The notes beneath the pieces are model-generated. The model saw only the letters and a program-made list of their open reading frames with translations. It did not search any database and had not been told where the DNA came from. Made by a program: the position numbers and the translations under genes. This document shows positions 4,495 through 49,692 of a stretch of DNA of 64,000 bases, piece after piece; position 1 is the stretch's first letter; each line of letters begins with the position of its first letter. The DNA comes from Oopsacas minuta (lineage: Eukaryota; Animalia; Porifera): contig JAKMXF010000303.1 of the NCBI GenBank assembly GCA_024704765.1, forward strand, positions 62,001 to 126,000. The letters are read 5' to 3'.

Positions 4495-7400
4495 ATGTCA
4501 TCAAACTCAGATAATCCGTATTTAGATTCTAAACTAATATCTCAAGCTATTGAAATGCTAACTAATCCCTTACAGAGGGAATATGTAGATGAAGTTTCTC
4601 CTGATTTAGCTTTCTTTAAAACTCTCCAAGATACCTCAATTAATTTTACAAGATTTTTAAACTCTAACAAATCGATAAAAGATGAAATTGACAAATCTAT
4701 CGTACATAATTTTCTTCCACTTTCTTGTATTGCAGCTGATAACTTAAAGCTAATATATTATGAATACACTTCTCATCTACTCAGAGTTTCTAATTTCATT
4801 GCTGTAGACAGAAATAATAAATTCATCAACATATCACTACAAAATCAAATAACAAAACTATTTCAATTTATATTCTCTCTGTGTATAGTACCATTCCTCG
4901 TACCAGGTAACGGTCCACCTCTATCAGAACGTTCTGTTACTCTAAAATATCTGACAAAACACAAGTCTAAACTAACATTAGCTACACTCACATGTCATCT
5001 GATAAGATGTTGTGACGTAATATTGAAACAGAGCTACATTACCTACTTAGTACCTCACATACGTGACGTAATAGCCTCCATATTACAGATTTCTTATTAT
5101 AATGGTTGTAAGGAATCAGCTTATAGTATATTTGCGGATAGATGTGTTTGGTACAGAGATAGATGTAGCGAGTTGTTAGCTAGATTTGAAACACCGCTGG
5201 TAGTCAGTGAAATAATGGTGTTACAAGGTCTAGCTAGACAGGCTGAAGCTAAATGGGTAATAAAGGTAACTTCACAAGAGCTATCTAAGATACTGGTCGG
5301 GCCGTTAGGTATTCAGTCAGTTCTGCGAGGATTCCTTGACGTCATCACAAAGGATCTATCATCAGATATTATGGACTATACTAAACTCAGAGTGATTGCT
5401 AATGTAATAGCAACTTGTCCAGGGAGAAATAGAGATGAGTACTATACTTCTGTTTGCGATCAGCTGTTAAATATATTGCATTTACGTAATGAATCATTGA
5501 AGTGTGACGTCATAACTGCAGGGATCTCTGTAATAGAAGCTTTAGTCGTGAATCAACCATTATGCGCTGAAGGAATGTTGCTGAATAAAATCACTTTACC
5601 GTTAGAGAGAATTACAACAGATATAACAGCCGATCTGATTGAAGATGAACTAACTCAAACAATTAATGATATTCATGACGTCATAACCAGAATCCCAGAA
5701 TGGTATAAACTAATAGAGACCTGGATAAGTAAATATATATCTCTTCTATTCCACTTGTATTGCTTTGATGTCGGTAAAATAACTTCAATCAGATCTGTTT
5801 TATATAGAATTATTGGGAAATATTTTCTCTACACTGAATCTGAACACTGTATATCCTTTGTTGAAGAAGCGTTATCTTATTTCCACAATAGACATATGTA
5901 TCCAGGTGATGTAGGTATAACGTTACATCATAACCTCGCTATCTCACTGGGAGATGAAGGTTCTCTGCAGGTAACCAAGGGAGACTCTGATAATGACGTT
6001 ATGATATTCTTACCTGAGTTATTCTTGTTATTAGAAACAAGTGATAAGTGTGTATGTTACCAATCAGTGCTTATTAGTCTCTTATGCTGGTTAGCTGAGT
6101 TAGTAGAATCACATGAAGACTACTGTACGTACTGTAGTGGTTATAGAGAAGGTGTACTGTATTTAGTAGCTCAGCTGCTGGAGGAGAGAGGAGAGTACAT
6201 TCTAGCCGAGTTAGACACAGAACCAATTCTACAATGGATTACTCGTATAGTCCTTATTCATCATGGAGGTATAGACAAGTATTATAATCTGGATGAGTAT
6301 AATGCTGGAGTGTTTGGAGGTACTAGTTCATTATCTATGGCATTTGGTAGGTTAATTAACAACACAACTTATTTAATTAATACAATTTCACCTGTAATAC
6401 AATCTCTAGGTAGTCTAACCTTCCTACTCTCCAGTAGCAAAGAAGTTAGTATTGAGATTAGCAGATTGCTACAAGAATTGCTTCCTTATTTAGAAGAAAT
6501 GGGTGAGAGATTCCCAGATGAATTATTACGCGCCCAATCAGCTGATCTCAGGATATGCATTGCTACCTGTGGTGCTGTGTGGTCAGACCTGTTAGCTACA
6601 TCTAGTTCTACTAACAAGTCAGTATATGCTACCGGTAATGAGGATATGACAGAATCTACAGATAAGGTAGAATACACATGTAGGAATATTAACTGTATTT
6701 GTTTGTTTATTTGAGGCGAAAGGGAAATCATTGCGTTGACTTTCAAAGCTTGTAATTTATCGAATCGTGAAAGTTATAATCTATAGTTAAACTCTTTATA
6801 GATTAATCAGATCCATAAATGAATTAAATACAAGCAATCACATGTGTTGATCAATTCCATTTATTATAGTGCCCTCGTTTGTTTGATTAATGTCTCTTGA
6901 TTTGAATCTAGGGCTCAAACTTCTCAGAAGCACTCTCTCACTCACTGGACCCCATGCTTCCTATAAGAGCTAATGGTATTCAACAGCTTTCTAAACTGAT
7001 ATACAAAAGAGATGAAGAAGCGTTAAGTAAAGCAGATCAGCTGTTTAAATTATTCAAAGAGAATCTCAGGAGTGAGGACTCCTATTTATACCTGGCAGCC
7101 ATCAGCGGGATAGCATCTCTAAGTTATGTTAGGCCGAGAGAAGTATTGTCAGATATTTCAGCTCAGTTTGCTGCATTTACACAGCAAGCTACTGCTCCCT
7201 TGATTGAGGAGATATCTAATGACAAACCTAACTACAAACCTACTCACACAAATACACTAAATAGTGTAGAGTTTCGTATTAAGTTAGGAGAGGTTCTTAT
7301 ACGAGCTGCTCGTGAATCAGGAGAACTATTTCCTCACTATGGAGATGTGATATTACGTGCTCTGTTAACTGGAGTACGGGATAGAGACCCCATGGTCAGA

Positions 7401-27006: not shown

Positions 27007-28371
27007 ATGATCTCAAAATTAGCTGTCCTGATCTCGCATAATGCAGACACACAATCCTCTTGCTGGACACGGCTCTTAGTAATAGACCCCCTCACTGGAA
27101 ACACACTAGATAAGAGAGAGGCTACAGGAGTAGACGGACGCTCAGTGACTATAGTAGGGTCCCCCAACTCACAAATAGGAGACTTACACTTCATCGCTTC
27201 AAGCGTGACCTCACGAATCACACGATTCCTTCCCAGCAGAGTTTCAGGCAATGTACACAGCACACAAGCACCTATACGCTGTCTCGTATCCTCATTAGAT
27301 GGAACCTACTATCTGGGAGCGGTGGGAGAGAGAGTACATGTATGGGAGAGTTGTACAGGTAATCAAGTGTGTGTACTATCCCAGCATTATCAGTCCGTGT
27401 CTGCACTAGCATTCTCTCCTGACGGTAACTATCTTATTTCTGGAGGGGAAGATGGTATTATATTTGTATGGAGATTCTCTCTAGTAATATCAGCTGCTTA
27501 TATGACACAGTTCAGTTTGGTAACTGTATCACAATCTGTACAGCACGAGTGTAATGAGGCTAGACTCAAGTACACACTTTCTGAGCACTCTCTCCCCATC
27601 ACCTCCCTTATCTGTGGGGTGGGAGGGATGAGGGGATTCCTCTACTCAGGTTCTGTGGATCACTCCTGTAAAATATGGGACCTGCTACGCGGGGTGTGTA
27701 TTGCTACTATTGCTGTTGGGGGAGTAGCTAGTTGTCTAGCTACTGACGTCACTGAGAGGTTGTTATTGATAGGAGAGAAGCATGGAGAAATTATAAAGAT
27801 AAAGATTAGCTTCTCACTACCTCATGTGGTTACATCTCTAGACATTGGTGAGAATAACCGCGATGAATCTTCTACAGCTACACAGCATCTGACAGAAGTC
27901 ACAAGTCTGGTTACACTTCGTGACAATATTCACTTCGTGTCTAGTGACCGGAGTGGTCAGCTGATTACCTGGCATCTGGACAGCTTACAGCCTATCAGAC
28001 GGTTAGAACTACATGATGCTATAACAAGTGTACTGCTACTACCTGTAGCTATTAGCAGAGCTTATTATGGTTACTCTAGTGGAGGTAAGTACTCAAACTC
28101 ACTTATTAAACCACCTCCTCCTAGTTGGATTACAGGAACAGCTAATACACATAGAGAAGGGCTAACTCTCTTCAGACAGCTTAGAAATATACCTATAGAG
28201 ACAGGTGAGGGGAGAGTATACACGGGTAATGAGGGGATAGGAACAGAGGAGACAAAACAAACAGAAGAATTCATTAACACAAGAATTGCAAATAACGAAC
28301 ATTTCAAGAAGTTAACTGCTAGTCTAGATGATATGTATAAGAAGGCGATTGAGTTAGATTTCAATTATTAG
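27007..28371 (+). CDS. WDR18: WD repeat protein 18 / Ipi3 (rixosome subunit), 454 aa, intronless
   Basis: APIRCLVSSLDGTYYLG..VHVWESCTGNQVCVLSQHYQSVSALAFSPDGNYLISGGEDG..LSEHSLPITSL matches the WDR18 pattern. Confidence 0.85.
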   Translation: MISKLAVLISHNADTQSSCWTRLLVIDPLTGNTLDKREATGVDGRSVTIVGSPNSQIGDLHFIASSVTSRITRFLPSRVSGNVHSTQAPIRCLVSSLDGTYYLGAVGERVHVWESCTGNQVCVLSQHYQSVSALAFSPDGNYLISGGEDGIIFVWRFSLVISAAYMTQFSLVTVSQSVQHECNEARLKYTLSEHSLPITSLICGVGGMRGFLYSGSVDHSCKIWDLLRGVCIATIAVGGVASCLATDVTERLLLIGEKHGEIIKIKISFSLPHVVTSLDIGENNRDESSTATQHLTEVTSLVTLRDNIHFVSSDRSGQLITWHLDSLQPIRRLELHDAITSVLLLPVAISRAYYGYSSGGKYSNSLIKPPPPSWITGTANTHREGLTLFRQLRNIPIETGEGRVYTGNEGIGTEETKQTEEFINTRIANNEHFKKLTASLDDMYKKAIELDFNY

Positions 28372-28552
28372 GCAGCTGCTAGATTGCACCTTATTTTAGT
28401 TCCACGACTTGGGTCTGATGTCACCTCCCCGGATTTATGCACCCTCAAACGGTAAGGTTGGCTTCGCCTCCCTTCCTCAGCTCCGACCGCGACCCTGGGG
28501 GTGGGGATCCAGCATCCTCTGCCCCACCCCCCCATAGGCTTAGGCGCGGCCA
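28372..28552. other. GC-rich island with a strong hairpin between convergent WDR18 and FAM210B
   Basis: About 60% GC in an AT-rich background; GGGGGTGGGG...CCCCACCCCC 10-bp stem at ~28496-28532. Identity unknown (MITE remnant or structured RNA). Confidence 0.4.
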
Positions 28553-28759
28553 CAAATTATCACGTTCGTGGCACGCCAAATTGCCCATTGCAAAGCAGTA
28601 AGGAAATTTTCATGTTTGAGTGCGGTGATGGCTTGTACTGCACTGCATACTGACTCATAGCTGTTACACAAAACAAGTGAAGCAGTTTCTTAATTATAAA
28701 ATCATAAAATTTCACAATATAGAACAAATAAGATATCAAATGAACGGATAGTGATATGG

Positions 28760-29263
28760 TTACTTGTCTTTTGGCTTTTTGATAGAGGGCTTCATCCACC
28801 CAAGTTTCCTAAGATATCTTGCTATGACCGGAACCCCTCCTATCGTGATGCCTAATCTGAAAGGAAGGAGTAATTTGTGCAACAAATAAGCAGCAGCAAG
28901 TGTTGAGAAGCCAGCTGTTTTCTGACTTACTTCCATACCAAAGTAGTTGAGTACTCCTTCTACATTAACTCCCACATGTATCACAGCATAACATGTTCCT
29001 AATGATATACACCCTATTGTTAGATAGAGTCCCATTGCTAGAGGTCCATACTCCTTTAGGAGTACTTTTAATTTCTGTGTTCTAGTCATATTTTTTTCTG
29101 TTTGTTGATTACTGAAAGAGCGACTATGTGGGGGTATAGGGAGTATACTGGGTTGGTAGCGAGTAATGCTACAGCAGTGAGTAAGTGTAGGAGAGAAGAG
29201 AGTAATCTTTGATTTGAGAGAATTACTGAGTATAGGTATCCAGCGTATACGAGAAATTAGCAT
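28760..29263 (-). CDS. FAM210B: FAM210B-like mitochondrial DUF1279 protein (167 aa)
   Basis: Presequence-like N-terminus. KLKVLLKEYGPLAMGLYLTI..AAAYLLHKLLLPFRLGITIGGVPVIARYLRK is the DUF1279 signature. Confidence 0.85.
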   Translation of the reverse strand: MLISRIRWIPILSNSLKSKITLFSPTLTHCCSITRYQPSILPIPPHSRSFSNQQTEKNMTRTQKLKVLLKEYGPLAMGLYLTIGCISLGTCYAVIHVGVNVEGVLNYFGMEVSQKTAGFSTLAAAYLLHKLLLPFRLGITIGGVPVIARYLRKLGWMKPSIKKPKDK

Positions 29264-32529: not shown

Positions 32530-33944
32530 TCAAGAAGGTAGTAAATCTGAAGCAAGAGCTTCTAAATCAGGAGCACATACCATTCGTCCAGATAAGTAAC
32601 CAAGGTGAGTTAAGTGTCCCTGAGCAGAGCCAGGAGGATGATCTATAACCACAAGTTCCTGCAAGAAATCAGCAGGAGTTGCATTCAACAAATCAAATGT
32701 AGCATCTCCTATTTTCATAGATACTCTCCCTGATTCATGAATCCGTATATTACCTAAGCTTCCTTGTGGCAGATCTTTTAAGCCAGACAACTCAGCTTTA
32801 CCATGCTTATGGGATGCTAAGTATTGCATTTCTGTTTCATCTGGCTTACGTGGTCTCTTTATCTGTAAATTATAACCAATAAATACCATGTGTTAATTAT
32901 GGCTAATAATTAGGTGTTTCCCAACTTTTATCACCTGTGAACTACCTCCCGTAGACTGTAATACAAATTTTGAGATCCTGAGGACCCCGTGTTGGGAACA
33001 GCTAAATTAAGTTTATATATTACTGGAAATTTGTCAGGCAGCTGTAGGAAGAGAATCTGTGCTTTGTCATCTGTAGAGTTGAATAGTTCTGATGGAAATG
33101 ATTTGTCTATTTCTTGATGACCTGGTGAGACACGAATAGGATCCAATCCTGGCCAGGGGGGAGTCAGCATGCGTGGCTTAGAATTCCAGAGAGATAGCAT
33201 ATCATCTTGACACTGCTTACCCAATATTTTAGCGTTAAGAGCTCTGTCTAGCGGTAGGACACGGGGAATAGAGTCGTCATAAGGATCTAAGTGTTCTTCA
33301 GAGTTGTCCTCATCTCTGTCTGCATTAGAAGATGTGGGTAAATCGGCTAGAAGTATAAATATATAAAAACTGGTGCCGAACGTCGTAAACCAACACAGCA
33401 AGTGAAGTGTAATATCTCCAGTTATCCCGCTTAATCGAGCCAGGTGGCCTGGATGCGAATTTATATATTAAGCATTACTGTACGTAAAACATAATGATTT
33501 GAGTGATATACTTATACAATTACCATCTGTTTGCATTTCTTGCTCCAAAATCAAATCAGCCTTCTTATCAAGTTCAATTTGAGATTTCTTAATTACTTTC
33601 TCAGCAAGACCGCAAGAGAATATAGAGGTTGTAACAAATACGTTATTCCTTCGCTTGTTCATCTCAATTTCTCTTTTACTGTCTGGAAACTGTTGTTTTG
33701 AAAATTGGTATTTATTCGATGAGTTAGTTTTCAATTTGTTGTGGAATATTGTAGCATCATTATTTGGCCGTTTATCTTTTTGTCTTTCAGAAGTTTCCTC
33801 TGAGTTTTCAGAGGGTGCAGGTCTCTTACGGTTATTAGGAATGTTTGGAGTGAATAGCACCTTTTTAGGTTTATTTGTCCCAGTCAATTTTAAATCTCTA
33901 CTCGGCCGTAAGGTCGGTAGCTTTTTCGTGGCATCAAGAGACAT
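32530..33944 (-). CDS. POLR3D: RNA polymerase III subunit RPC4; three exons (33944-33524, 33346-~33030 or ~32950, 32862-32530)
   Basis: N-terminal LPTLRPSRDLKL..KVLFTPNIP, middle ILFLQLPDKFP, and C-terminal LKDLPQGSLGNIRIHESGRVSMKIGDATFD..FLQELV are RPC4 features. The exon-2 donor is ambiguous. Confidence 0.9.
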
Positions 33945-35592: not shown

Positions 35593-38500
35593 CTAAAAAC
35601 GCTTTATAATAAAATGCATAACTAAACAAGGGTCGCGCTCCAAACAGCAATTTTTTGATAGAATTCGAGCGTAGACAGTCTGGAGGGTCTGTGCCAGTTG
35701 TAGTTTAAGAGATATCTGAGTCTTCTTTAGATTATGTTGAATTGTAACCTGTAGAATATCTGATTAATATGTATTGTTAATTTGAGATGTAGAGTATGGT
35801 TTATTCTAGAGCACTATTCCAATTACAACATATACATACAGATGCAGAGGCGCCGAACTTTCTAATAACATCAACGATGCAGAGGGGGCTCACATATATA
35901 GCTCTATGAGGCTGTAACCAAGCTTTCTCAAGACCCCCCCGGTTCGGCGCCTATGTACAGACATTATAAAGTAATTACACAAGACGAGAAGGTCAAAACA
36001 CATGTATTTTTTATTTTCTTTCAATAAGGTAATTTGGATCATTTTCAAATAGGTATACCTGTTCAATGCTCTATTCGGATTAGTTAAAGTTCGAATAAAC
36101 GAATGTGTACTGAATAGATAAGTACCTTTATACTTGGAATTCTAGTTAGTAGGTTGATGCTGTGTTGCTGAAATATGAATTGGCTAAAAACAAGAAAAGT
36201 TTTAAAATCTCAAACTGAATTACATTCAAATATAATAAGATGTAATAATTTCAAAAACAGCAAAATTGACAATATTTGAACATTAATTCTAACCATGAAT
36301 CCCTGATCCCATATATTCCTATTGAGTAGAGGGTCACTATGTAAGGAGAGAGGAGGAATTAGTGAAGGAGCAGATATAACAGTAGGAACTTGTGATGGAT
36401 CTGTGAGTGCTGTTGCTATTCCTCCCTGTAGAACTGCTAATGGTCGATCAACTATAAATAGAATTGTTATGAGATTACTTTACGCTCGTTTGTTAGGAGC
36501 TTAAGGCTATTGACAGGGCATCGGGGATTTAATAACGTCATAGCGGCCCAGCCACATTTGATAAGATTATTTACTTGTAGACTGCCAAGAATAAGTTTTA
36601 CGACTCTTATTCTCTTATTCGATTTAATTGATATCATTTATTACAATTTCAGTACTTTTCCATCTGATATGCATTCTCAATCCAGAATCTCGAAATTATA
36701 TTCTGTTATTGTATGCGCTACTATCGTTATATACGTGGTTATATACAGAAGGTACAATATTATGTATTTACATTTAAGGGGCTGACTCAGGTGGAAGGGT
36801 TGAATTCACTGGATAGAGGCCAGTGTTGACTATTTGACTCCGTACTGACAACCCTCCTGAAAGTAATCAGCCCAATTAAGTACGTAATCCTATAGGAAGT
36901 TTGTACTACACATACCTTGTGGATTTAAAGACTGGGGGTGTGCCCCTAGAGCAGCAACAGTGCTATGAGCACCAATAATGTGGCTAGTAGCATTTTCTAG
37001 TGATGTGAGTAGAAAGGACTGTACAGGAGGAGCTATACCTGTCACCAGTTGCTGAGGCAGACTTACTGAGGTAGGATAGACTACAGCTGCTGATACAGAT
37101 GGTAATACGGTTTGTAGAGGGACGGTGAGATGCGGATGATTGGTCTGAGAGAGGTGGGGTAGAGGGTATATAGATGATAGGTTTGATTGGAATCTATCTG
37201 GAATAGAATAAGGTTCTGTTCTATTAGATTGTCTGCGTGTACGCATCCTGCTGTTAGTAAATTGGCTCTCTAATCTACATAATAGATAGCAGTAAATACC
37301 AAATAATTTAATAAAGAATAATAGTTACTGACCTTTCTGAAGACTCGTTTAGATTATTCAATAACCAAACAGCTTCAGCATTTTGTGCTAGCTCATCATC
37401 GTGTATATTAAACAGCGCTGGGTCCACAAGTACATCTAGTAATAAAATAAATAATACGGGGAACTAATTTCTCAGAAGTATATTGGCTCTGAAAAGTGCT
37501 AGTAATGAATTCTCACAATCCATTCACCCCATTATGCAGTGGATCCGGCTTAATGTCATACCCCTCGTGCACGAGTGTTTATGACATTATCCGGGAAGTA
37601 AATTTCCTGCTAATTTCATTATTCTCGTGTGAATAGGACATTATCCGGGATAATCTGGGAATACAATTGGAATACGTAGTATGGATGTACGTGCTATGAC
37701 GTGTTTAGTACTAAATGGCAGTACGTGTAGACACACCTATATGCAAACGAGTCTTTCACACTGTTTACTTAAATATAGTATATTTCCACAAGTTTCCTTC
37801 TAATAAACTCGATTTCGCGGATAATAATAAGCTATTATCCGGGAAGGATACCAAATCTGACTACATTTTTATGAGAATAAGACTCAATAACAGAGTTGTT
37901 TTAGTAGAAAGAAACTAAAATGGTTTCGAATTTGAACATTTTATGATAATAAACGTGATCCACTATAACAGTAAGGTTATAAAGAATATCCTAGCCTCAT
38001 ATTATTGTAGATGCAAAAGCATGGAGGCTAGCGGAATAGTATTCATCCATGGTGGAGGTGCGGGGAGTATGATAGGAGAGAGCATGTGGAAACAGCTGAT
38101 CAGAGAGCATGGTATCTCTGTAGAAGGAATTAAAGACGACTCAATAATGTTTGACTGTCCGGGTGTAGCATTTCAAGAAATAGATAAGGGGCTTTACAGA
38201 CCTCGGAGCCTGTTTATCGACCCTGATGCACAGGACGTAACCAGGATACGTAAAGGAATGTTAAAGAAGTTATGGAGCCCTGATACTAACTTCGTTACTA
38301 GTAACAAAGACACAGGTAATTTATACACAGAGGGGTATTATACAACGTATTATTCTGTGAATGAAGGAATAACAGAGAAGATTAGACGACTTGTAGAACC
38401 AATTGATCAGCTGGAGGGGTTCCTCATATCCAGGAGTGTGAGTGGTGGAACAGGCAGTGGATTAATGAAGAGAGTTATGACAGACCTAATGAGAGATTTT

Positions 38501-39754
38501 ACTAAGCGACCTATTGCAGAAGTATGTCTATTTCCGTCTACGAGATATTCAGATATGCCAATAGAGCCATATAATGCTATGTTTGGTATAGATACTACAG
38601 ATAACAGTAACTGCTATAGCATGCTACTCAGTAATGAAGGAGTAGGGGAGTATATAGCTAATGCATTCTCTAAGCCATATTGTACTATGTCAGAGATAAA
38701 TTCTGTTATAGCTAGATTAATGTGTAATGTAACTTGTCAGGCACGTATGAGCGGAGAGAGGGTCTTAGAGAAATTGATTAAGACAGCAGCTTATTCCTGT
38801 CGTGCATTCAACATTGCTATGCCCAGTTATTCAGTATTATGTCATGAAGATAACAACAAGCTAATTGAATGTAAACTTGACCTCACAAGACAAATATTCC
38901 AGGATTACACTCAGTTGTTGGGTTACCCATTAAGTAAATCAGTAGGAAATTATCTAAACTATCAAGGTAACACGTCAGAGTTAGAAGCTCATGGGATACT
39001 GACGTCATCAGGTAGTTTTGATATTTCTAAACTGTCAACAAACACATCAATAAATGCTATAGAGAAATGGGTACCAACAAGGGTATTTGAGGATAGCTCA
39101 GCTCCTTATTGCGAGCTAGCACATGTAAGTGTAAACGTGGGTGTGTGTCAGGCACTGAAAGACCTGGCTAAGAAGTACGATAAGTTAATGTCTACTAGAG
39201 CATATATTCACTGGATAGTAGGTTGTGGTATCAGTAGTGAGTGTGTGGGAGTAGAACGAGAAGAAGTACAAAGTTTTATTCAGGATATTTCAGAAGTATT
39301 AGAATGAAATAGCTTATGAGATTGTGTTAATTAATATGTTTATGGAATTATAGACTTTATTATTAAAAGTTTAAGATAATATCTTACCGTCCACAGGATC
39401 TACAGGGTTAACATGTGTATGTGCTATAGAAGAGGAGTTCTGTCCATCTAGAATGAAGTACGAAGCAGTATCCATGTAAGTTGATGGGAAGTTAATAGGA
39501 GAGGTATTTAGCTGACTATATGTAAGGATGTTAGGAGTACCTACATATGCAGACAAGAGGGAGGGGTATACGAGGAGAGGGGACCAGACGGGCTGTGTTA
39601 TTACAGGGGTGTTACCAGGATTAACGCCAGTAGGAGGTGCTTGTGATAGCAATATGTCTGGTGCTACGTTAATACGTGGTATAGCTGAGTTTATAGAAAT
39701 ACCAGCTACTGGTGGCCACACTTGTCCTGCATGGGATGAGTTAGAATTTCTCAT
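35593..39754 (-). CDS. Uncharacterised Pro/Ser/Leu-rich protein; hand-built exons 39754-39388, 37435-37333, 37250-36916, 36451-36294, 36167-36126, 35748-35593 (386 aa; 5' and 3' ends may extend)
   Basis: Six segments join by GT-AG with consistent phases (1,2,1,0,0) into one open frame of 1161 nt. No family recognised. Confidence 0.6.
35845..35955. mobile_element. hAT-like MITE in an intron
   Basis: CAGAGGCGCCGAAC...GTTCGGCGCCTATG termini; flanks TACAGATG/TACAGACA (6/8) resemble an 8-bp TSD. Confidence 0.55.
37537..37965. mobile_element. ~430-bp CAGTGGATC MITE-like element directly upstream of the tubulin gene
   Basis: CAGTGGATCC...GATCCACTA|TA termini. The interior is clearly homologous to 48413-48958 (AGTACTAAATGGCA..GTAGACACA.CTATATGCAAACGA; GGGAAGGATACCAAATCTGA). 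Confidence 0.7.
38021..39307 (+). CDS. Highly divergent alpha-like tubulin (428 aa, intronless)
   Basis: Colinear with tubulin over its full length: IHGGGAGSMIG..W..EHGI, RPRSLFID, DTGNLY..GYY, SGGTGSG, IEPYN, NE, RAYIHWIVG. The ATG at 38021 is preferred over 37943, which lies inside the MITE. Confidence 0.88.
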   Translation: MEASGIVFIHGGGAGSMIGESMWKQLIREHGISVEGIKDDSIMFDCPGVAFQEIDKGLYRPRSLFIDPDAQDVTRIRKGMLKKLWSPDTNFVTSNKDTGNLYTEGYYTTYYSVNEGITEKIRRLVEPIDQLEGFLISRSVSGGTGSGLMKRVMTDLMRDFTKRPIAEVCLFPSTRYSDMPIEPYNAMFGIDTTDNSNCYSMLLSNEGVGEYIANAFSKPYCTMSEINSVIARLMCNVTCQARMSGERVLEKLIKTAAYSCRAFNIAMPSYSVLCHEDNNKLIECKLDLTRQIFQDYTQLLGYPLSKSVGNYLNYQGNTSELEAHGILTSSGSFDISKLSTNTSINAIEKWVPTRVFEDSSAPYCELAHVSVNVGVCQALKDLAKKYDKLMSTRAYIHWIVGCGISSECVGVEREEVQSFIQDISEVLE

Positions 39755-49230: not shown

Positions 49231-49692
49231 CTAATACTTTGAAGTGAGAATTCTAGCAAACACTTCGTAGTTAATCATTCCATTACCATCAGTTTCTGCT
49301 TCATTAAGCATTTCATCTACTTCATCCTCTGTTAACTTCTCTCCTAGAGTTGTCATAATATGTCTCAGCTCTGAAGCACTAATCTTTCCGTTACCTTCTT
49401 TATCAAACACCCGAAAAGACTCACGTATCTCTCCCTCACTATCTTGTTCCTTCAGTTTAGTCTGAATTAGAGTGAGGAAAGTATCAAAGTCTACAGTCCC
49501 CGAGTTATCAGGGTCAGCTAGCTGCTGCATATCCAGGACCTCACTCTCTGAAGGGTTCTGACCTAGAGAACGTAACACGGTGGGGAGATCCTTCTTAGAA
49601 ATGGTGGAATTATTTTTATGGTCAAACAGAGCGAATGCTTCCTTGTACTCTGCAATCTGTTCTTCAGTAACTCCTGCTTGTGAATGTGCCAT
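49231..49692 (-). CDS. Calmodulin-like / myosin light chain-like EF-hand protein (153 aa, intronless)
   Basis: [71 protein letters not shown] follows the calmodulin scaffold, but the loops are non-canonical. Confidence 0.92.

Follow-up and report, generated by a model that had tools for sequence, protein, structure and literature searches.

In a 64,000-nucleotide stretch of the genome of the glass sponge Oopsacas minuta (assembly GCA_024704765.1, contig JAKMXF010000303.1, positions 62,001 to 126,000 of the forward strand; this whole stretch is referred to below as the window), an intact, intronless gene encodes a tubulin that differs from alpha-tubulin about as much as the recognised tubulin classes differ from one another. 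We name the gene and its orthologues family A, and show that it has a second divergent tubulin, family B, as its sister. What is new here is an animal tubulin pair that is divergent at the level of a class, is inherited together and has suffered complementary losses. Family A is probably, though by no means certainly, a glass-sponge-specific tubulin of alpha descent that would bind GTP, would be dead as a GTPase-activating protein (GAP), and would act through its longitudinal contacts with B as preferred partner. The gene lies as follows.

38021 to 39307, forward strand: complete, intronless coding sequence of the family A tubulin, 428 aa and stop (open reading frame, Pfam Tubulin match, methionine shared with orthologues, AlphaFold2 model, Foldseek).
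37943 to 38020, forward strand: upstream in-frame extension of the open reading frame, outside the protein (absent from orthologues; 1-nt indel at 37965).

An open reading frame runs from 37943 to 39307 on the forward strand. The ATG at 37943 was ruled out as the start, as the orthologues have no such extension and a 1-nt indel at 37965, found in sequencing runs X2, X3 and X5, breaks the frame; the ATG at 38021 is the true start, the homologous methionine beginning all orthologues. The Pfam model Tubulin (PF00091) matches residues 6-207 of the protein (E=1.1e-36, 127 bits against a cut-off of 33), and no Pfam match to Tubulin_C was obtained by sequence. Alignment to alpha-tubulins of solved structure runs end to end over residues 6-426 with 141 bits (beta-tubulins, 124 bits), so that the claim of an earlier note on this DNA, that an intact 428-aa intronless frame aligns with alpha-tubulin over its whole length, is borne out. 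Identity to alpha-, beta- or gamma-tubulin is 25-30%, and to alpha about 25-27%. Single-chain modelling with AlphaFold2 gave a confident tubulin fold (mean predicted local distance difference test score 92.1, predicted template modelling score 0.93), complete in its three domains and including the intermediate domain, H11 and H12. When the model was submitted to Foldseek the top 50 matches were all alpha-tubulin chains, with template modelling scores of 0.87-0.91 to solved tubulins. The family A protein is thus a member of the tubulin/FtsZ superfamily with the eukaryotic tubulin fold, and the match is far beyond chance.

A word-based search recovered five full-length relatives of 427-432 aa, 63-72% identical and all intact and intronless, from related assemblies which we call glass-sponge type on the basis of shared microsynteny. 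A sixth (locus L007; ERZ20067936 ptg000409l, 6001-7265) is 54-58% identical and is the deepest-branching orthologue; in this copy one G is missing from a run of G directly after SNEGVG, so that the gene call falls into two pieces, and the frame is otherwise open. Because the L007 copy retains 81% of the positions invariant among the other six, with 36% identity at variable sites, the lesion would be either an assembly error or a very recent frameshift. The ratio of non-synonymous to synonymous substitution (dN/dS, Nei-Gojobori) is 0.09-0.23 in every unsaturated pair of family A orthologues, and a 96%-identical relative from run X5 differs from the Oopsacas gene at 24 listed codons, 9 of them non-synonymous and 15 synonymous. 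The earlier note had ascribed the open frame to selection and had named missing expression with a dN/dS near 1, or else disrupted orthologues, as the signs of a young pseudogene; with these ratios, and with five of the six orthologues intact, the first view holds and the second fails. The family A gene is functional, vertically inherited at a fixed, putatively nested position, which is described below, and under purifying selection.

To see how far the family extends, a profile of six family A proteins was searched against 1.84 billion representative proteins, which gave 4283 matches, of which the best 150 were examined. Family A itself scored 882 bits and the two pieces of the L007 gene 314 and 235 bits; two multi-domain alpha-tubulin fusions reached 220 bits, summed over domains, and the next full single-domain proteins formed a continuum from about 180 bits in which ordinary alpha-tubulins came first. 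Canonical beta- and gamma-tubulins followed at about 143-147 bits, and the anchor sequences scored 142-156 bits for alpha, 124-134 for beta and, lowest, 99-110 for gamma. The best 150 of the 4283 matches were alpha-, beta- or gamma-affiliated and nearly all alpha, with alpha first by about 35 bits. Among the 1.84 billion representatives no bridging sequence lay between family A (882 bits) and the ordinary alpha-tubulins (about 180 bits), and relatives were found only in assemblies with glass-sponge microsynteny, as would be expected of the lineage-specific tubulin that had been suggested.

The segments of the protein that bear on nucleotide binding and hydrolysis are listed here with residues of the protein; positions in the text are in alpha-tubulin numbering unless marked as protein residues.

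38054 to 38077, forward strand: T1 loop GGAGSMIG, protein residues 12-19, with Gln11 replaced by Gly and the alpha-type Ala retained (alignment; invariant in family A).
38213 to 38236, forward strand: T2 motif FIDPDAQD, protein residues 65-72, derived and common only to A and its sister family B (alignment; invariant in A).
38441 to 38461, forward strand: T4 signature SGGTGSG, protein residues 141-147 (alignment).
38744 to 38788, forward strand: remodelled T7 and H8, RMSGERVLEKLIKTA, protein residues 242-256, shortened and without N249 and E254 (alignment and AlphaFold2 model).
39251 to 39304, forward strand: H12 and C-terminus; the protein stops right after H12, with no acidic tail (alignment and AlphaFold2 model).

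The nucleotide pocket is largely retained. Alignment confirmed every pocket feature that had been read from the sequence, namely SGGTGSG, the Asp of FID (D69, in FIDPD of T2), the D..N pair of T3 (D98 and N101), EPYN of T5 (E183) and the nucleotide-contacting asparagines N206 and N228. SGGTGSG agrees with the signature [S/A/G]GGTG[S/A]G (PMC10056924) and so is no deviation; its Thr is Ser in two orthologues. T1 reads G-G-A-G, and the base-stacking Y224 is Met or Ile in family A. Alignment and orthologues likewise confirmed that the protein starts M-E-A-S-G-I-V with no MREC or MREI, that its H1-S2 loop is 4-5 residues shorter than that of alpha and has no Lys at position 40, that Gly stands for Gln11, and that it ends at ISEVLE without an acidic tail.

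The earlier note had also read the T7/GAP loop as apparently lost, and here the outcome is mixed. RMSGERVLEKLI occupies the place of RFDGALNVDLTEF; N249 is replaced by V, A or G, no acidic residue aligns with position 254, and the T7 region carries a net deletion of 2 residues. In the AlphaFold2 model H7 ends at 244, a 3-residue turn occupies 245-247 and H8 spans 248-256, against a T7 loop of about 8 residues in alpha. G246 is kept, however, and a conserved acidic residue (E/D250) stands at or beside the position of D251, so that the loop is better called remodelled than absent.

Conservation within family A is highest in the pocket (T1 0.87, T2 0.93, T4 0.83, S6/H6 0.85), is also high on the longitudinal faces (T7 0.78, H11-H12 loop 0.80) and is lowest in the M-loop (0.36) and H12 (0.45). 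On the minus-end face (T7, H10, H10-S9) 0-11% of residues match alpha, although this face is conserved inside the family; the plus-end face is the most alpha-like part, with identities to alpha of 61% in the H11-H12 loop, 59% in T4 and 48% in T2. Identity to alpha is 0-5% in the M-loop, H10 and H10-S9 segments.

Two side observations concern these motifs in other proteins. The G-G-A-G form of T1, with Gly for Gln11, also occurs in divergent alpha-like protist tubulins from Paramecium, foraminifera and unnamed metagenome sequences (P0052, P0053, P0072, P0074, P0080, P0081, P0096, P0123, P0137), and the change looks like a recurrent one in divergent alpha-like tubulins. An alpha-like orphan, P0010 (467 aa, on an ENA contig of 1563 nt), has HWLVGCGLES in H11 where family A has HWIVGCGISS, with a canonical DLDP in T2 and GQCGTQIG in T1; the HW-VGCG common to the two may be a convergence.

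A long-branch match of the family A profile search, P0118, is the Oopsacas minuta protein KAI6661566.1, named 'Tubulin alpha chain'. With seven orthologues at 55-71% identity it makes up family B, which is only about 23% identical to A. In a tree with both families fully sampled (LG+C20+F+G4), A and B are each monophyletic (100/100) and are sisters (96/95, stem 0.37), and the branching orders inside the two families mirror each other. Because both sit on long branches, independent characters for the grouping were sought, and four are common to A and B alone: FIDPD[AG]QD in T2, where all other tubulins in the set have D-L/T-E/D-P; an extra residue before T3; a 2-residue deletion at GYPL / SCPL; and a 3-residue insertion after S8. 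Tree and characters together show that A and B are sister families. Both occur in at least four genomes (Oopsacas, ERZ25069837, ERZ25072740 and ERZ20067936).

Like A, family B is intronless, has no catalytic Glu, is found in the same assemblies and mirrors the species topology. Unlike A, which retains its pocket, B is without N101, and its T4 signature is interrupted by a deletion; B keeps D251 and L252, has Lys at position 254 in 4 of 7 members, and has an H11-H12 loop almost identical to that of alpha (86% alpha-like). Most members of B carry long acidic Ser/Asp tails, whereas A has no tail, and B lies at another locus, adjoining an EMP70 gene. Most of the B tails examined (P0185-P0191) are rich in Ser, Asp and Glu, of the form SDSDSDSD...EVEE, and the Oopsacas copy ends early, at EYNDGC. 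At the B loci (L008-L011) the order is a leucine-rich-repeat (FBXL15-like) gene, then tubulin B, then EMP70.

The class from which the pair derives was examined in a tree of A, B, alpha-, beta- and gamma-tubulins and Asgard tubulins. In the mixture-model maximum-likelihood tree a split (98/94) separates beta, gamma and Asgard tubulins from alpha, with A and B on the side of alpha, and approximately unbiased (AU) tests marginally reject A with beta (p=0.039) and A with gamma (p=0.034). D98 is present in both families and absent from beta, gamma and the Asgard outgroups. B retains VHWYVGEGMEEGE[FL]SEARE, where beta has LHWYTGEGMDEMEFTEAES and the Asgard sequences SHWYTDSGLTEE and THWYENNGVSRE; A retains VHW-VG-G and ERE in the H11-H12 region, and its S9-S10 stretch has 29 residues (alpha 30, beta 22). 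The class features of beta, a GQCG T1 and G98, are not found in A, whose T1 and T3 are alpha-type. Other characters are less telling: of the two families only A has Ala12, which also occurs in one beta anchor, B having S, C or T there, and Y/F103 is alpha-like but not alpha-specific, F being present in an Asgard outgroup. With moderate confidence we regard A and B as descendants of alpha-tubulin, and we infer, with good support, that the pair goes back to a duplication of an alpha-tubulin which predates the divergence of the sampled glass sponges. A FastTree analysis of 123 matches had grouped family A with Paramecium and foraminiferan orphans; this was rejected as long-branch attraction, as the mixture trees do not recover it and the orphans have no FIDPD-QD motif.

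In canonical microtubules, D251 and E254 of alpha activate GTP hydrolysis across the longitudinal contact (PMC10056924, PMC7018511, PMC8764682), and mutants of E254 give stable, hydrolysis-deficient microtubules (PMC7018511, PMC8764682). Against this background family A would still bind GTP, because nearly all nucleotide-contacting residues are conserved, and would be unable to stimulate hydrolysis in the subunit beneath it, because T7 is shortened and N249 and E254 are gone. Lacking the MREC start and K40, and having no tail that could be modified, it would escape the usual controls on alpha-tubulin. It probably lies outside the normal microtubule wall and is probably not built for motor binding, since the pocket and longitudinal faces are the best conserved parts and the M-loop and H12 the least; a head-to-tail, non-hydrolysing partner is the more likely role. 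The preferred partner would be B, in a GTPase-dead A-B pair, because B has no intact GTP signature, neither protein has the catalytic Glu and at least four genomes contain both.

Several observations weigh against this reading or parts of it. ERZ25071281 gave B without A, although a 90%-identity cluster may conceal its copy of A. The changes of Q11 to G and of Y224 to M could weaken GTP binding. T7 of B is poorly conserved (0.40), and its H11-H12 loop, 86% alpha-like, would also suit pairing with an ordinary beta-tubulin. As to descent, the AU test does not reject A with canonical alpha to the exclusion of B (p=0.089), nor A and B together on the beta/gamma side (p=0.20), and the count of diagnostic positions is alpha-like but Asgard outgroups score the same as A and B, many such sites being ancestral. 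With descent from alpha-tubulin most likely and two deep positions left unrejected by the AU tests, the suggestion in the earlier note of a new tubulin class is too strong; its further proposal, that the protein caps, nucleates or regulates, is still conjectural. No sequencing run containing the family A gene is recorded as RNA: runs X1-X3 have flat coverage at the gene, typical of genomic DNA, and X5, which covers the coding region only, could be DNA or RNA.

An alternative is that A substitutes for alpha in a dimer with ordinary beta-tubulin, with a minus-end face that can neither dock on the GTP site of a beta subunit nor activate it. Such a dimer would end a protofilament at its minus end, as a cap or anchor, or, if incorporated, would leave GTP unhydrolysed and stabilise the polymer locally, a property that might serve the long-lived microtubule bundles in the syncytium of glass sponges. 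The plus-end face is the most alpha-like part of A (61%, 59% and 48% in the H11-H12 loop, T4 and T2, as above) and the top structural matches are all alpha chains; moreover, the engineered E254 mutants show that stable, hydrolysis-deficient microtubules can be made (PMC7018511, PMC8764682), and alpha3 of Toxoplasma, naturally without D251 and E254, has been proposed as a polymer stabiliser (PMC10056924). Overall identity to alpha is only about 25%, however, and folding and dimerisation with beta require conserved cofactor surfaces; with 0-5% of residues shared with alpha in the M-loop, H10 and H10-S9, and with an M-loop that varies even among family members, incorporation into a normal lattice is doubtful. 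The co-inherited sister family B is also left unexplained. We consider this alternative unlikely.

Also to be weighed is a bolder form of the A-B pairing, which we hold to be quite unlikely: a heterodimer descended from two alpha copies, which holds one GTP permanently and lacks any catalytic residue, might form a non-dynamic filament or scaffold distinct from microtubules. If this were true, an animal would have a second cytoskeletal system made of tubulin, and this might be connected with the giant syncytial tissue of Hexactinellida.

A and B might instead be glass-sponge members, or lineage-specific duplicates, of the centriolar delta- and zeta-tubulins, acting at basal bodies with epsilon, and we judge this very unlikely. 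Delta and zeta are sister classes which co-occur with epsilon and have no acidic tails (PMC4202323), the AU test leaves a position of A and B outside the alpha group unrejected (p=0.20), and a search in language-model feature space, which is not an alignment, finds 'Tubulin delta chain' clusters closest to A (0.95) and to B (0.94), a result that again speaks against our preferred reading. The last is a lead only, for B, with its alpha-specific motifs, receives the same answer. In the profile search every named match above 126 bits was alpha, beta, gamma, alpha-like or Asgard; alpha came first by about 35 bits, no delta- or zeta-type sequence was recognised in the best 150 of the 4283 matches, and the names of the 30 matches that were looked up were alpha, beta, gamma-labelled, Asgard or unnamed, with none delta, epsilon or zeta. 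Searches of the PDB with two orphan matches produced no delta, epsilon or zeta anchor; P0105 proved to be a canonical gamma-tubulin and P0010 the alpha-like orphan mentioned above. Both families carry the alpha-derived D98, B carries VHWYVGEGMEEGE-SEARE and A the alpha-type Ala12 (shared with one beta anchor), and the unique FIDPD[AG]QD and the indels common to A and B point to a recent common ancestor rather than to a split before the last eukaryotic common ancestor. A 2014 survey, furthermore, found no species with duplicated delta, epsilon or zeta genes (PMC4202323). A place in a known divergent class such as delta, epsilon or zeta, which the earlier note had named as a refutation of its view, is disfavoured by the alpha-derived residues and by the order of the profile matches.

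That the gene is a decaying or non-functional alpha-tubulin retrocopy, open by coincidence, is so improbable that we set it aside: it is intronless and highly divergent, no run containing it is on record as RNA and the L007 orthologue has a 1-nt frameshift, but six intact frames including that of Oopsacas (427-432 aa, 63-72% identity), the low dN/dS, a highly non-random conservation of motifs, a syntenic nested position fixed in seven loci and an L007 copy which keeps 81% of invariant sites and has its lesion in a G homopolymer exclude a pseudogene.

Animal tubulins are among the most conserved proteins, and animal alpha isotypes are normally more than 70% identical. Set against canonical alpha-tubulin, A has the full fold and finds in alpha its best matches in sequence and structure; it shares the Ala of T1, D98, the Y after T3, the long S9-S10 loop, HW-VG-G and ERE in the H11-H12 region, and the pocket residues D69, N101, the T4 signature, E183, N206 and N228. 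It differs in having no MREC, K40 or tail, in the changes of Q11 to G and Y224 to M or I, in a shortened T7 without N249 and E254, and in an M-loop, H10 and H12 that are unrecognisable.

Tail-less or GAP-less tubulins of alpha type are already known from protists, namely coccidian alpha3 and the alpha-like tubulins of ciliates and Naegleria (PMC10056924, PMC4202323). Like A, alpha3 of Toxoplasma and other coccidia is of alpha type without the canonical GAP residues and has non-conserved M and H1-S2 loops, and slow or absent GAP activity has been proposed for it (PMC10056924); unlike A, which is far more divergent and tail-less, it is a clear alpha isotype that begins with MPREI and has a very long tail. 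The divergent alpha- or beta-like tubulins of ciliates, Naegleria, Entamoeba and others ('kappa', 'theta', 'iota') are, like A, lineage-specific, strongly divergent and without the acidic C-terminal E-hook; they group loosely with alpha or beta, and some of them have lost the P-loop and are thought to be structural (PMC4202323, PMC11321004). None of these is from an animal, none has the FIDPD-QD motif and, under the mixture model, none forms a supported clade with the sponge family. The engineered alpha mutants E254A and E254N (PMC7018511, PMC8764682) have lost the catalytic Glu and kept GTP binding, as is predicted for A, but they are point mutants in a normal lattice, whereas in A the T7/H8 face, the lateral loops and the outer surface are all changed. 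Delta and zeta resemble the A-B pair in being divergent, paired sister families and, as A is, tail-less, and no large clusters come closer to it in language-model feature space; they were not recognised among the best 150 profile matches, and A and B carry alpha-derived residues and a unique motif of their own. No description of the pair was found in the literature searched, and two glass-sponge genome papers (one of them PMC10282587) do not mention tubulin.

The pair has persisted throughout the divergence of the sampled glass sponges, at a distance from alpha comparable to that between recognised tubulin classes. Its losses are complementary, A keeping the GTP pocket but not the GAP loop, and B keeping a more alpha/beta-like H8 and an alpha-like H11-H12 loop but not the GTP signature. 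A and B thus offer a natural experiment on the features needed for nucleotide binding, hydrolysis and lattice formation, and bear on the evolution of new tubulin partnerships and on the organisation of the syncytial, streaming cytoplasm of glass sponges.

The genes which surround tubulin A in the window are these.

27007 to 29263, both strands: WD40 gene (forward, 27007 to 28371) and FAM210 gene (reverse, 28760 to 29263), synteny anchors (Pfam; same order in L007).
32530 to 33944, reverse strand: RNA polymerase III RPC4 gene in three open reading frame pieces, synteny anchor (Pfam RNA_pol_Rpc4, 6e-23; same position in L001, L005 and L007).
39388 to 39754, reverse strand: conserved putative exon of the host gene, ending in a GTAAGA donor near 39387; open reading frame 39371 to 39754 (71-81% aa identity over the full length in five of seven related loci, partial at 69-71% in two).
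36890 to 37250, reverse strand: next conserved putative exon of the host gene, preceded by a TACTAAC...CAG acceptor near 37250; open reading frame 36890 to 37246 (57-79% aa identity in all seven related loci).

The gene order WD40-FAM210-Rpc4-tubulin is repeated in the related assemblies. The host gene of the tubulin is Pro/Ser/Thr-rich and unnamed, and a Pfam search of both its exons gave no match. Because splice-like signals bracket the gene, tubulin A most likely lies nested, in antisense, in an intron of about 2.1 kb of this host gene in all eight genomes. Nested genes and microsynteny are abundant and conserved in glass sponges (PMC10282587), and the antisense nesting of tubulin A would fit that pattern.

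Three further observations were made in the window. Past the host-gene exon, between 39780 and 40080, lies a short dispersed repeat: in each of the three genomic runs read depth there goes up 5- to 20-fold, and numerous contigs break off with loose ends. An RNase MRP RNA gene lies at 1623-1861 on the forward strand (Rfam RF00030, 98.9 bits, full-length match), and at 49231-49692 on the reverse strand an intronless gene encodes a 153-aa calmodulin-like protein with four EF-hands (EF-hand_7, E=7e-28).

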